Assembly: GCA_048013815.1 (NCBI GenBank) | Contig: CM106585.1 | Coordinates: forward strand, 15,066,001 to 15,130,000 | Origin: Setoptus koraiensis | Taxonomy: Eukaryota; Animalia; Arthropoda | Direction of reading: 5' to 3' | DNA length: 64,000 bases | Part shown: piece after piece, positions 27,786 through 49,651 of the stretch | Layout of the letters: every line of letters begins with the position of its first letter | Position numbering within the stretch: position 1 is the stretch's first letter | Program-made: the position numbers and the translations under genes | Notes under the pieces: model-generated | The model's database searches: none | Told to the model about the DNA's origin: nothing | The model's input: only the letters and a program-made list of their open reading frames with translations

Positions 27786-29788
27786 TTAGAAACTAGAAAA
27801 TTCTTCTGAACATAGTTCTGAGGATGCGGTCCTTAGTTCTTCCTCCTCGTATTCATCAAAATTGCTAGTATCCCCGGCGTTCTTACATTTGGGTAGAAAT
27901 GGTGCCTCGACCTATAACAAGGAGTACAATATAGACATAATAAATATAAATATTCAAAACAATTCAAATTCTTGCTCGAACGAATGATCTTGATCAATAA
28001 AATTTGATGAAGTGATTATCGGCAACTCTTCATAATGCTCAAAGTGTCGAGTGTCACCTCGGTGTGTTAATCTAGGTATTAGAGGTGCCTTTAACTAAAT
28101 AGCGTTGATCAGTTTTTTTTTGTTAGTAATAGTTGGTTATTTGTCAATAAGTTGACAGAGAGAGCATATGGTATTCACGAGGATTGTTTTAATGAAGTTA
28201 CCCGTGCACCATGCAGACAAATAAGGTTAGTGTTTTGGGGGTACGGATTCGTGCATTCAAAGAATTGTTAATAGTAGGTTGATGATGATTAGTCAAATGA
28301 AAATCGTCATGCATATAAAATCAGTAATAAAGGATCCTGGACTCTGAGCGGGAAAAGCATGCATGAAAATAAATTTGTATAGAATATAAAAAATTACCTT
28401 CTTTTGGAAAATGGCTATCCAATCGGTTGATGCGAACCACCTGTGATTTTTGATATCGTTGACTCCATTCTTCAGATTGCCAAATCGCTTTGTTAGATCA
28501 ACTTGCAACAAGTTTCGCAGTAGTTCTTTTAATTCTGAAGTGAAATGTCCGGGGAATCTATATTTGCCCGAGACTATTTTTTCATAAATCTGTATGGGTT
28601 GATCAGCGAAAAAAGGAGGATATCCTGCCGCCATTTCATAAATTAAAACTCCTAACGCCCACCAATCAACTGCTTTATTATAACCTTTGCTAAGTATAAC
28701 TTCGGGTGCGAGGTATTCCTGATGTTGACCAATATAATATCGATGATAGATTAAGGTTTATGAAGAGAGTGTATTAGTGAATGGATACAGATTAATTCCG
28801 AAGTATACTGAGATTGTGAGTGTAGAGGTGCATCCTTACCGGTGTACCACACAACGTCCATGTGCGACCCTTGACCTTTTTGGCGAAACCAAAATCTGTG
28901 ACCTGATGTGATAGTTGATACAATGTTAATGTTAGCTGGATAATATGGGAAATGTAGCCAGGTTGATTGATGGAATGGAAGACTTACTTTGATATAACCT
29001 TGGTGATCAATTAATAGGTTTTCTGGCTTCAGGTCACGATAAATGAGATCTAAATAGTGTAAATATTCGAATGCCAACACAATTTGTGCCGCATAAAATC
29101 TTGCTGCTTGCTCACTAAATCTGCCAGTCTTCCTAAGATGAGAAAACATCTCACCTCCCGGGACGAATTCGAGAACCATATATAAATATGCATTGTCTTT
29201 GAATGAGGCTTCCAATCTAACTAAAAATGGAAAATTGACAGCTTTCAATATACGTTTTTCGTTGAGTGTATGCTCCACTTGTTTCAATTTGACTACTTTT
29301 TGTTTATCTAATATTTTCATAGCAAAAAATTCTTTTTTAACTTTATCCTGCACTAGCATAACGCGCCCAAAGCTACCGGTACCCAATGTTTTAACTCGAT
29401 CAAAATCATCTAAGCTGGCCGTATTCCTTTCTGGATTGTCCCATTTGCGTTCAAAGTCCTTTTTGGCTTCGGCCAAATATTTTTGAACTGTTTACACAGT
29501 GTATATTGCACAGTTGCATGTTGGTTGGTGGGTCAATCCGTGGATGTATCCGAGGGGTTGTAGTGTGTTTTTGGTGGGCAGTTTGGAAATGTGTCGTTGT
29601 GTGACAGAGATGATAGGGATAGATATTAATTGAGAAGATTAGTGACTGTTGGCATATCGAGAGTTTGGTCTGGTACTAGATGCGTTGGAAAATAATAAAT
29701 ATAAAATAATAATATATAAAAATTAGTGTTGGAGATAAGCACCATTTTCGGCGTGATCGCCCTTCTTAGAAGTCGGCGTATTCCCCAT
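27786..29788 (-). CDS. Pka-C1: cAMP-dependent protein kinase catalytic subunit, canonical isoform. Exons 29788-29743, 29487-28988, 28902-28840, 28718-28398, 27911-27786; 351 aa
   Basis: MGN myristoylation start on a 46-nt first exon. Kinase motifs [23 protein letters not shown] and TLCGTPEYLAPE. C-tail [12 protein letters not shown]...FSSF. Exons total 1,056 nt in frame. The exon-1 donor (G|GTGCTT) is weak. Confidence 0.96.
27954..28094 (-). CDS. Pka-C1: Alternative last coding exon of PKA-C (not in the ORF track)
   Basis: The TTTAG| acceptor is in phase 0, matching the donor at 28398. It translates as [46 protein letters not shown], which aligns with the downstream exon [24 protein letters not shown]...EEFSSF*. 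Confidence 0.85.
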   Translation of the reverse strand, partial: LKAPLIPRLTHRGDTRHFEHYEELPIITSSNFIDQDHSFEQEFELF

Positions 29789-30948
29789 CAAAGCCCGAAT
29801 AATAGTATATCATATGTTTAGTCGAATATAATCTAATGTGTGTCGTAATAATAAAATGATGATAGATTATTTTACAATCTCTCTTTGCTCTTTTTGCTAT
29901 TATAGACACAGAGGGAGAGAGTGATTGTGCGTTTGTCTGTGTGTGTGTATACAATTCTATGCAAGAAGCAAGACAGACATGCAGACAAACAGGCGAGCAC
30001 TATAGGGAGAGGGGAGAGACACAGATGATGTTGGTTCAGCACTAATGACGGTGATGCAGAGACAGCGAGAGAGAGAGAAATACGCTGCGTGGTGGTGTGT
30101 GTAGGTGAGTAGTGTGTGTGTGCGTGTGTGTGTGAATACCTGAAATATTCACTTTCCTGTAATAATAATAATAATAATAATAATAGTTGATATTGTTCGT
30201 ATTTCTGCAGCAGCACTGCTGATTTCTCTTTCTTTTTCTCGCTATCTCGCTGTTTGTTGTTTCTGCTGTATTGAGTGAATGTGTGCTGTCGGTTGTAATG
30301 GTAATAATAATAATAGTAATAATAATAATAATAATTGTAATAATAGCAAAGCGTATCTCTCTTGATCTAATTTGATGATGATATTTTGCGTCTGTCTGTC
30401 TGTGTCTCTCTCTCTCTCTCACTCACTCTATATGAAGCTCGCTTCGAACGGATCACAACGCACACACGCACACACACACACCAACACACGCACACACACA
30501 CACACTCAGTCAGTCAGTCAGTCACAGCTACCAATCGCTCGTTAGTTGGCTCGCTCGCTCTCTTGCTCAGCGTGTCAGTCGTGTCGTCGTCTCGATATAT
30601 ATATATATATAAATATATTGTGTGTACATTTACGGCGAGACGCAGCCAAAGAGAGTGTGTGTATTTTCTGAGTCTAATAGTGGCACTAATCAATAATTAT
30701 TAATTTAGCATAATATGGTAAATAAAGATGATAACGATGATGCTGGTGATAGTCGTCGTCGTCGTCGTGGTAATATCATTTGCACCAATAGGCTGCTAAA
30801 AATACACACAAGCCATCCAATTGTTGTCTTCCATTCGTCGTCGTCGTCGTCGTTTGCATCGAAAAAACAACAATTCCTTATTGGCCCGTGGCTGCTTTCA
30901 CTGCGCTGCTCTGGCTGCTGCTTGCCTGCTGCAACTCGTCGTCGCGTC

Positions 30949-30996
30949 GTGTGTGTGTGTGTGTGTGTGTGTGTGTGTGTGTGTGTGTGTGTGTGT
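30949..30996. repeat. (GT)24 microsatellite
   Basis: Perfect dinucleotide run read directly from the sequence. Confidence 0.97.
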
Positions 30997-49441: not shown

Positions 49442-49593
49442 CTGTAAGTGGATGACGACAGGATATGGACACACGATATGGATACACAAGGCAGGCGATT
49501 TAGAGATGTACGCAATGCAAACGATACACACACAGAGATGAAGAGATCAAACGGGCATAAAACAATTGGATAATCCCGTGTGCGGGCGCTTAC

Positions 49594-49651
49594 CTGGCTC
49601 GTCGTGATCGCGCCGCTTTCGCCTCTTAAATATCTGGCCTATTTTGGGCAT
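49594..49651 (-). CDS. Distal first coding exon MPKIGQIFKRRKRRDHDEP (phase-1 donor); predicted alternative PKA-C N-terminus
   Basis: ATG at 49651 with an in-frame TAG upstream. Consensus donor CCAG|GTAAGC and an upstream acceptor ctacag| at 49683. In frame with both the giant exon and PKA-C exon 2. Confidence 0.65.

Follow-up and report, generated by a model that had tools for sequence, protein, structure and literature searches.

The 64,000-nucleotide window that we analysed (Setoptus koraiensis contig CM106585.1, forward-strand positions 15,066,001 to 15,130,000) carries on its minus strand a gene for the catalytic subunit of PKA (PKA-C). Its exon 2 (28988..29487), the end of which is at 28988 and not at 28986, begins in phase 1 behind the acceptor aaacag/TTC that is shared between isoforms, and is followed by exon 3 (28840..28902), exon 4 (28398..28718) and a last exon (27786..27911, stop included) encoding the canonical C-tail ...EFSSF, for which an alternative last exon ending in ...EFELF (27954..28094) could substitute. 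Exon 2 aligns with mammalian PKA-C structures from residue 17 onwards (E = 3e-83), and 321 of the 351 residues of the full canonical product are identical to the mite protein P0007, which identifies the kinase core from exon 2 onwards as a PKA-C orthologue.

The canonical first exon, overlooked previously, lies at 29743..29788 on the same strand, 255 nt ahead of exon 2. This exon 1-1 encodes a myristoylation-type N-terminus that begins with MGN, carries basic residues at positions 7 and 8 and an aspartate at position 10, and ends on a phase-1 donor (G/GTGCTT) whose split codon gives Val15, all of which are listed features of exon 1-1, including the Asp10 of invertebrates (PMC5526564). Its peptide is identical in related species, both in L002 (an mRNA) and in L004/L006, with nucleotide identities of 85-98% in L001, L003 and L004, and the N-terminus of P0007, itself an mRNA-derived protein of a relative, corresponds exactly to the predicted join of exon 1-1 and exon 2. 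Relatives that have lost all other PKA-C introns still retain the one between these two exons. Joined to exon 1-1, the gene encodes 351 aa with the canonical last exon and 356 aa with the alternative one, and because this myristoylated exon is present, the ordinary 351-aa kinase is almost certainly the main product of the locus.

Far upstream on the same strand lie two further exons that are compatible with exon 2. Exon A (49594..49651) comprises 58 nt, that is, 19 codons starting from the ATG at 49651 (MPKIGQIFKRRKRRDHDEP) plus a G, and ends on the phase-1 donor G/GTAAGC. After an intron of 152 nt (49442..49593), in which no AG occurs between the one of the donor itself and the acceptor ttacag, exon B (44072..49441) opens at ttacag/TT and continues for 5,370 nt, or exactly 1,790 codons, to GAC T/GTGAGT at 44072, with phase 1 at both ends. 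Its low-complexity product begins V-CPLQIRFI...HGAPS and ends ...GSDFD plus the T of a split codon. From there to exon 2 stretches a GC-rich, minisatellite-rich interval of 14.6 kb (29488..44071) that holds exon 1-1 together with the canonical promoter, has no credible open reading frame in its 29.8-44 kb part and, read as the intron of a long isoform, would exceed every other intron observed in the window about 30-fold in length, a point against that reading. Re-reading the sequence bore out the coordinates of exons A and B and the start of exon 2, along with the phases and splice signals on which a giant PKA-C had first been proposed, and joining exons A, B and 2 to 5 indeed gives 6,438 nt and 2,145 aa, with a computed mass of 233.6 kDa and the predicted junction ...GATTTCGACT to TTCAAAAATATTTGG. 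On the other hand, the 355-aa form that had been envisaged from direct splicing of exon A to exon 2 has no counterpart in the gene models of other mites.

Exon B is under coding and frame constraint. Its frame is free of stops for 1,851 codons, as against at most ~185 in the other frames of the same strand, while composition alone would lead one to expect ~0.035 stops per codon, so that the probability of 1,790 open codons is near e^-60. Tandem repeats have periods divisible by three in 14 of 14 rows within exon B, compared with 15 of 39 in the spacer (Fisher p = 6e-5), and repeats of other periods start directly after the 44072 donor; the raw open reading frame runs on for 46 codons beyond this donor into such a minisatellite, up to a TGA at 43932. 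Indel variants of exon B in the read sets X1, X2 and X4 measure 3, 15, 12, 6 and 3 nt, and five of six cases preserve the frame; the sixth, a possible frameshift, is a 1-nt insertion at 49218 in one X2 contig, by which the reading frame of the exon would be lost 74 codons from its start.

The body of exon B, in contrast to its frame, bears little resemblance to known sequences. Neither Pfam nor word-index database searches returned a homologue, HMMER found none for the first 1,200 aa among 1.84 billion representatives, and an Atlas search yielded only weak matches to disordered hypothetical proteins of arthropods. The middle of the exon thus has no demonstrable homology to anything searched, and Rfam gave no family match over 29-53 kb.

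It is the two ends of this upstream unit, and their position relative to exon 2, that tie it to PKA-C. In the predicted (RefSeq) models of Brevipalpus obovatus PKA-C1, isoforms X1 and X2 (XP_074603926.1, 512 aa; XP_074603927.1, 501 aa) start with a first-exon motif, MPGFKSLFRLSKKKDKNNE, that is related to the one of the window, and both first exons have 58 nt, with 19 codons plus G/GT in the same phase (L013, 3001-3058). The motif, MP....(L/I)F(R/K)..(K/R)3D, is common to the window, B. obovatus, Tetranychus urticae and Panonychus citri (the latter two as MPFKGLFRLSKKKDKNSD in their X1 isoforms; XP_015789796.1 / T1KSF6, 397 aa, and 395 aa, respectively). In the general form M-P-x(3-4)-(L/I)-F-(R/K)-x-x-(K/R)3-D, encoded by a phase-1 first exon of 55-58 nt, it is present in the window, and the N-terminal motif recurs in Ornithodoros and a barnacle. 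When residues 1-60 of the joined product were aligned with the corresponding 60 of XP_074603926.1, the score was 49, as compared to 21.1 +/- 4.2 for shuffled sequences, of which 1 in 2,000 reached it. At the opposite end, exon B closes with GAT TTC GAC T/GTGAGT, and its B. obovatus counterpart with GAT TTT GAT T/GTAAGT. The encoded SDFD occurs a single time among 1,789 exon B residues, namely as the last four, and leads into the same SDFD-F-(Q/R)(K/L)YL junction in both species. Compared with the extension in B. obovatus isoform X1, exon B agrees both at its start and at its SDFD end. Aligned on their own with B. obovatus, the final 45 aa do not reach significance (p about 0.07), and only the anchored SDFD end counts here. 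The codon split before exon 2 specifies Phe in the window and in B. obovatus; in T. urticae and P. citri it specifies Val, the junction reading QY-V-RLYL rather than SDFD-F.

The layout of the locus is conserved as well. In each case the long intron includes an MGN exon, which precedes exon 2 by 255 nt in the window, 290 nt in B. obovatus (exon at 6900-6946, exon 2 at 7233) and about 115 nt in T. urticae (~8141 versus 8300), and the orthologous long introns measure 3.1 kb in B. obovatus, 4.9 kb in T. urticae and 5.7 kb in the relative represented by L006. For T. urticae, the splice is real: the translation of contig L016, which lacks introns, is identical to the 397-aa long isoform, and on the genome this contig falls into exons A, B and 2 across the 4.9-kb intron, which is thereby proven at the mRNA level and, as in the model for the window, holds the MGN exon. 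What sets the window apart is scale. Exon B has only 130 nt in T. urticae, and the extension of B. obovatus amounts to 178 aa spread over three exons, compared with ~1,810 aa from two exons in the window; the long intron has 3.1 kb there versus 14.6 kb, GC content at the locus is 41% versus 51-63%, and the neighbouring gene upstream is Sec23/24 in B. obovatus but OSBP-related in the window. That no such isoform was known, as the initial annotation had it, is not entirely accurate: long N-terminal isoforms of the same type, with 45-160 extra residues, do exist in mites, ticks and crustaceans.

A further instance comes from an eriophyoid-like relative (L006-L009), in which a 903-codon open reading frame lies on the same strand 5 kb upstream of PKA-C. 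Its sole strict GTRAGT site, GAC T/GTAAGT, is in phase 1, and the order of long open reading frame, GC-rich spacer, PKA-C and Fis1 recurs in four independent metagenome assemblies of this relative. The exon has at least 773 codons in this relative (L006) but 1,790 in the window, and no exon A was found within 2.6 kb upstream of the L006 frame. Exon B and the 903-aa product share four collinear motifs, but in phmmer and blastp comparisons the real sequence could not be told apart from 3,000 shuffled decoys; we treat the two as positional orthologues only. Neither tblastx nor sensitive blastn nor the pairing of peptides behind phase-1 acceptors revealed a conserved terminal exon or block within the spacer, and the four haplotypes of the relative carry too few differences to test constraint.

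Taken together, we consider it likely that this is one PKA-C1 gene with two promoters, of which the distal one drives a long isoform containing the giant exon B. A proximal promoter just upstream of 29788 would yield the myristoylation-type kinase of 351 aa, with exon 1-1 spliced to exon 2. A distal promoter upstream of 49651 would give rise to the arthropod 'long N-terminal' isoform, in which exon A (58 nt, polybasic MPKIGQIFKRRKRRD...) would be spliced to exon B, and the exon B donor at 44072 to the exon 2 acceptor at 29487, across the 14.6-kb intron with the proximal promoter and exon 1-1 inside it; the split codon would then encode Phe instead of Val. Exon B may have grown to 1,790 codons by in-frame expansion of GC-rich minisatellites in this lineage, from a segment that in other mites contributes about 45-160 low-complexity residues, and the resulting 2,145-aa, 234-kDa isoform is predicted to be disordered over its first ~1,810 residues. 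As a gene model, the predicted path from exon A through the giant exon to exon 2, in phase 1 throughout and ending in a 2,145-aa product, is strongly supported by orthology. The proposed model thus retains the architecture first put forward, adding the orthology with the B. obovatus long isoform and the canonical exon 1-1 that had been missed. The giant exon itself is best read as a long-isoform exon of a kind known from arthropods that has become extremely large, roughly 11-40 times the size that such exons have in other species. Since it would be an expanded copy of the short alternative N-terminal exon that is spliced onto the kinase in other mites, Setoptus koraiensis probably has a PKA-C of 234 kDa in addition to the normal form of 351 aa.

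Of the competing readings, the one that survives best is that exons A and B form a separate gene for a ~1,813-aa disordered protein. The donor at 44072 would then be joined to a local 3' splice site at 43917-43916 by removal of a 156-nt intron, adding L-S-S-A before a stop (TGA at 43904-43902), the transcript would end in the spacer, and PKA-C would be expressed from exon 1-1 only. This had been our first and clearly favoured reading, because the MGN exon had escaped the earlier annotation; it also rested on the short introns elsewhere, the lack of homologues and the local AG-free stretch, and it became improbable with the long isoforms of Brevipalpus and Tetranychus. The predicted splice site (43902..43917 up to the stop) is indeed the first AG after 123 nt that are free of AG and 70-73% pyrimidine, and the intron would have a size typical of this genome (83-255 nt). 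L006 presents a similar picture, with 121 AG-free nucleotides after the donor and then an AG, 131 nt after the donor, that would lead to S-S-R-TGA. However, AG-free stretches of at least 100 nt are common in the repeat-rich spacer (23 in 20 kb), and no AATAAA follows within 1.5 kb downstream. An independent orphan gene should have a stop and 3' end of its own and termini without homology to its neighbour, whereas here both ends are homologous to exons of PKA-C long isoforms, the conserved terminal SDFD plus T and the Phe junction make sense only if exon B joins exon 2, as in B. obovatus, and for T. urticae, splicing of the orthologous donor to exon 2 has been demonstrated.

The read data from this species, mapped over 43660-49659 only, bear on the same question. 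Contigs from X1 and X2 agree with the window over this interval except for breaks at repeats, and because they cross intron A and the 44072 donor unspliced, we regard them as DNA-like. X4 contributed sparse, low-depth pieces there, and X12, a putative RNA run, matched the poly-Q repeats only. The runs that contain PKA exon 2 are not listed as containing exon B, and the putative RNA runs among them showed little or nothing of it, as a separate gene would allow; the only runs with exon B are DNA-like, and no transcript from Setoptus koraiensis was seen.

A second alternative, which we judge to be very unlikely, is that the long isoform has been abandoned here, with exon B as its relic and an open frame that is either left over or owed by accident to the composition of repetitive DNA rich in A and poor in T. 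In its favour, the body of exon B has no homologue, its size is not conserved between L006 (at least 773 codons) and the window, the X2 insertion at 49218 may represent a frameshift allele, and one related species has wholly lost the exon 2 acceptor. In that species PKA-C is fully intronless, and the long isoform must therefore be dispensable at least there. Yet a frame as long as this is not to be expected by chance given its composition and the shortness of the other frames, repeat periods are multiples of three throughout the exon but mixed outside it, and both splice sites as well as both terminal motifs are intact. Finally, a misassembly of 30-44 kb, such that exon B and PKA-C would not truly lie 14.6 kb apart on one strand, might be suspected from the repeats of this segment, its GC content unlike that of the flanks and the restriction of read mapping to 43660-49659, but it is hardly credible given the same gene order in the four metagenome assemblies of the relative, the match of the X1 and X2 contigs over the mapped part apart from breaks at repeats, and the fact that exons A and B are orthologous to exons of PKA-C, owing to which their linkage to PKA-C is expected.

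Returning to the two-promoter gene, the question arises as to what the extension might do. The poor conservation of its sequence would fit a tolerated expansion, and we infer that the added residues are largely a linker that is tolerated, and not a functional module newly gained. A working role of the ~1,800-residue extension in the kinase, as a built-in tether or an arm forming condensates through which the catalytic core would be localised or autoregulated in cis, appears rather unlikely. If it were functional, the polybasic MPKIGQIFKRRKRRD head would replace the myristate, and three motifs that appear collinear with the open reading frame of the eriophyoid-like relative could mediate its role, namely an RRLS PKA-consensus site (residue 796), TLTRPSC, and an amphipathic KAxxLFKMLKDRD just before the junction; only TLTRPSC scores above shuffled sequences. 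A search for an AKAP-like docking module gave no Pfam match. Besides, two short helix-like motifs, SKAAHSLFKMLKDRD and LVKKVSRLSSLLF, were noticed by eye and are candidate docking helices at most.

N-terminal exchange at this junction has precedents in several systems. The long isoforms of Amblyomma americanum (O97115, 421 aa), Ornithodoros turicata (X4, 412 aa) and Amphibalanus amphitrite (X2, 411 aa) share with the window a short basic N-terminal motif (MNIFKRSSSRKKDKG, MSFLFGKKKKKD), by which alone their first exons are suggested to be orthologous to exon A, and a low-complexity spacer with Phe at the split codon (..AFDF-KEFL, ..SF-EKFL), although the spacer has 60-80 aa instead of ~1,810. 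Tick PKA-C isoform cDNAs are credited to Tabish et al. 2006 (as cited in PMC7517725). In vertebrates, the long 5' exons of C-beta2 and C-alpha-L (63 residues for PRKACB exon 1-2) offer a parallel, and diverse 5' exons of invertebrates include some that lie 5' of exon 1-1 (PMC5526564). The vertebrate exons replace the myristoylated exon 1-1 and join exon 2 at the same phase-1 position as in the window, but they are located downstream of exon 1-1 and ahead of exon 2, code for no more than 63 residues and show no sequence similarity to those described here. The DNAJB1-PRKACA fusion of fibrolamellar carcinoma (e.g. PDB 4wb7), to residues 72-235 of which the window's exon 2 aligns, likewise carries a foreign N-terminus in place of exon 1, with PKA-C starting from exon 2. 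It arises, however, from a somatic deletion between two genes and adds a folded J-domain of ~70 aa, whereas the window would combine a germline alternative promoter with a disordered segment. Dictyostelium PkaC, of about 648 aa, has a homopolymer-rich N-terminal extension of about 330 aa and thus resembles the window in being naturally long and of low complexity at its N-terminus, yet it belongs to an unrelated lineage, and its extension is constitutive rather than alternative and about five times shorter.

For genome annotation, the locus illustrates that a large 'orphan' open reading frame can belong, as a 5' exon, to the gene that follows at a distance of 14 kb. For the evolution of mites, it would record a datable, runaway in-frame expansion of minisatellites within an alternative exon, from 130 nt in Tetranychus and about 480 nt in Brevipalpus to at least 2.3 kb in the eriophyoid-like relative and 5.4 kb in the window. 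PKA-C is among the most conserved and best-studied kinases, and the natural variants known at its N-terminus are longer by no more than tens of residues, or by ~160 in the case of the Brevipalpus model. If our reading is true, a 234-kDa form with a disordered chain of ~1,810 residues at the exon 1/exon 2 junction, where rewiring by DNAJB1 is oncogenic in humans, would constitute an extreme natural experiment and a test of how much N-terminal cargo the kinase tolerates, and of what this cargo does to localisation, control by R subunits and phase behaviour. Should the extension prove functional, no larger PKA catalytic subunit than that of Setoptus koraiensis would be known, and it would provide a natural counterpart to N-terminal rewiring of the DNAJB1-PRKACA type.

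On the minus strand of the window, a 58-nt first coding exon (exon A, 49651-49594) starts with the ATG at 49651, encodes MPKIGQIFKRRKRRDHDEP plus a G and ends in the donor G/GTAAGC (slashes mark exon boundaries). A giant exon (exon B, 49441-44072) opens at the acceptor ttacag/TT and stays in frame for 5,370 nt until GAC T/GTGAGT, both ends being in phase 1, while the shared kinase exon (exon 2, 29487-28988) also starts in phase 1, after aaacag, and aligns from residue 17 with mammalian PKA-C structures (E = 3e-83). The coordinates, splice signals and phases which the initial annotation had assigned to these exons are thus all present, and recomputing its joined product, exons A and B plus the remaining PKA-C exons, again gave 2,145 aa (233.6 kDa). 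Since the longest opening in the other frames of this strand spans ~185 codons and composition predicts ~0.035 stops per codon, the exon B ORF cannot be attributed to chance.

Exon B is coding as far as its donor. Every one of the 14 Tandem Repeats Finder rows within it has a period divisible by three, as against 15 of 39 in the spacer between donor and exon 2 (Fisher p = 6e-5), and the repeats beginning directly past 44072 have periods of 8 and 28. Relative to the window, contigs from sequencing runs X1, X2 and X4 carry indels of 3, 15, 12, 6 and 3 nt, the sole exception to multiples of three being a 1-nt insertion. The latter lies at 49218 in the X2 contig, next to an A>C change, lengthens a G-run of the coding strand and would cause a frameshift 74 codons into exon B; either a true allele or an error of the contig may explain it. 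Of the extension, 78% consists of polar, small or disorder-promoting residues, and residues 371-410 form its only 40-residue segment with at least one third hydrophobic residues. No Pfam domain was found in exon B, nor a homologue in three large searches. GC content is 0.51-0.63 across the 31-49 kb block versus 0.37-0.42 in the flanks with the neighbouring genes. The interval 31000-49000, comprising exon B and the long intron, is crowded with minisatellites, and positions 1-10300 of L006, a contig of an eriophyoid-like relative, are GC-rich as well (0.55).

The initial annotation overlooked the canonical PKA-C first exon (exon 1-1), which lies at 29788-29743 on the minus strand, 255 nt before exon 2, and ends in G/GTGCTT, phase 1. 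It carries Lys7, Lys8, Asp10 and Val15, the hallmarks of invertebrate exon 1-1 (PMC5526564), and its conservation extends to four related genomic contigs. Together with exon 2, the exons at 28902-28840 and 28718-28398 and the last exon at 27911-27786 (C-tail ...EFSSF), all on the minus strand, it gives a predicted 351-aa kinase identical at 321 of 351 positions to P0007, the product of a spliced Logan mRNA contig from a related mite, whose N-terminus corresponds exactly to the predicted exon 1-1/exon 2 join. An alternative last exon on the same strand (28094-27954, ...EFELF) gives 356 aa; its tail resembles an extra C-tail segment of Leptotrombidium and Tyrophagus PKA-C models. A Fis1 homologue (27231-27557, plus strand) converges on the PKA-C stop at 27786, a pairing kept in eriophyoid-like relatives.

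Invertebrate 5' exons of PKA-C are diverse, and some lie 5' of exon 1-1 (PMC5526564). In a 90% cluster around a relative's PKA-C, other acariform mites are represented by RefSeq long isoforms: Brevipalpus obovatus X1 (512 aa) and X2 (501 aa), Tetranychus urticae X1 (397 aa) and Panonychus citri X1 (395 aa). Acariform long-isoform N-termini, MPGFKSLFRLSKKKDKNNE and MPFKGLFRLSKKKDKNSD, are similar to exon A. Over its first 60 aa, the joined window product scored 49 against Brevipalpus X1 (shuffles 21.1 +/- 4.2, with 1 of 2,000 reaching 49). The extensions also meet exon 2 at a matching junction (...KEKSDFD-F-RLYLEQ in Brevipalpus, ...GSDFD-F-QKYLAE in the window), and exon B, with its 1,789 residues, contains SDFD a single time, as the final four. 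As in the window, the Brevipalpus gene (L013) has a 58-nt exon A (19 codons plus G/GTGAGT), a last extension exon closing with GAT TTT GAT T/GTAAGT, and, 290 nt ahead of exon 2, a canonical MGN exon within the long intron. This score, the single terminal SDFD and the shared gene structure support homology of exon A and the end of exon B with the Brevipalpus long-isoform exons. Tick and barnacle long isoforms carry comparable basic motifs at the N-terminus, and their split codon encodes Phe; for ticks, PMC7517725 cites cDNAs (Tabish et al. 2006). In T. urticae, the translation of the intronless mRNA contig L016 equals the 397-aa isoform residue for residue, and the contig's genomic alignment splits into exon A, a 130-nt exon B and exon 2, with the MGN exon inside a 4.9-kb intron. 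The proposed splice is therefore a real and conserved event in mites; for S. koraiensis itself, splicing and translation of the long isoform, as well as any function of the extension, are what we infer.

A pattern scan for the exon 2 start located metagenome contigs of the eriophyoid-like relative, whose PKA-C is identical to that of Aceria tosichella at 344 of 351 positions. As the initial annotation had suggested looking for, a long same-strand ORF lies upstream: four independent assemblies (L006-L009) hold 903 codons 5 kb from PKA-C, across a GC-rich spacer, with Fis1 converging downstream as in the window. Its sole strict GTRAGT, the putative donor GAC T/GTAAGT, is in phase 1 and in a context equal to that of the window donor. 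Similarity to exon B amounts to four collinear short motifs, not significant against decoys: RRLSSIIDQL (a PKA-consensus RRxS site), LVKKVSRLSSLLF, TLTRPSC and SKAAHSLFKMLKDRD, at exon B residues 796, 1471, 1609 and 1757 (window ~47050, 45030, 44615 and 44170). TLTRPSC alone exceeded shuffles (51 versus a maximum of 44). PKA-C introns have been lost among eriophyoid-like relatives (L001, L004/L006, L010-L012): two species retain the exon 1-1/exon 2 intron alone, and one has a fully intronless 351-aa gene, which leaves no acceptor for a long isoform there. A 49-kb contig of GCA_030272615.1 encodes a mite PKA-C (P0139, labelled 'uncharacterized protein LOC131872981 [Cryptomeria japonica]') beside mite Fis1 and MTPAP; the conifer assembly seems to be contaminated with mite DNA at this contig.

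Exon B might instead splice from 44072 to a local terminal exon at 43915, ending in LSSA and a stop and yielding a kinase-less protein, which we consider unlikely. In window and relative alike, the donor is followed by ~120 nt of pyrimidine-rich sequence without any AG, and splicing to the first AG beyond would extend the frame by 3-4 codons up to a TGA. This kept alive the reading of exons A and B as an upstream gene of their own that encodes a disordered protein, which we favoured at first and downgraded to unlikely after the Brevipalpus and T. urticae long isoforms. It would accord with definable window introns of 83-486 nt, the domain- and homologue-free exon B, the distinct block composition and the proximity of exon 1-1 to exon 2. 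However, T. urticae exon B is demonstrably spliced to exon 2, and the long intron is large in all compared mites (3.1, 4.9, 5.7 and, in the window, 14.6 kb), so that length is no objection. That exon B is a relic out of use seems very unlikely, and a misassembly at 30-44 kb still less probable. Runs X1, X2, X4 and X12 were aligned to 43660-49659; among the runs listed, exon B occurs in X1, X2 and X3 only. X1 and X2 contigs bear out the assembly over this interval and are unspliced across the exon A-exon B intron and the 44072 donor, which marks these runs as DNA-like; X1 depth is fairly even. X4 yielded few pieces, at depth 3-6, and matches of the putative RNA run X12 were confined to poly-Q repeats.

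The locus is thus probably one PKA-C1 gene with two promoters, of which the distal one makes a long isoform with a hugely expanded exon B. The proximal promoter would give the ordinary 351-aa (or 356-aa) kinase and the distal one the arthropod long isoform, exon B having presumably grown from ~45-160 residues to 1,790 codons by in-frame expansion of GC-rich minisatellites. On the plus strand, an EGLN/PHD ORF (22426-23529) is immediately preceded by a second giant low-complexity ORF (16834-21816; 1,660 aa, with an A-rich coding strand), an arrangement that mirrors the layout of exon B and PKA-C; by analogy, the giant ORF could be an expanded 5' exon instead of a separate gene. Given this other low-complexity ORF, the sober reading of exon B's size is a tolerated expansion. 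While the initial annotation knew of no such isoform, the class does exist, as predictions, one mRNA contig and tick isoforms attest. If confirmed by transcripts, on which its significance hinges, the ~2,145-aa form would be about four times as long as the longest member found (512 aa) of this already known isoform class.
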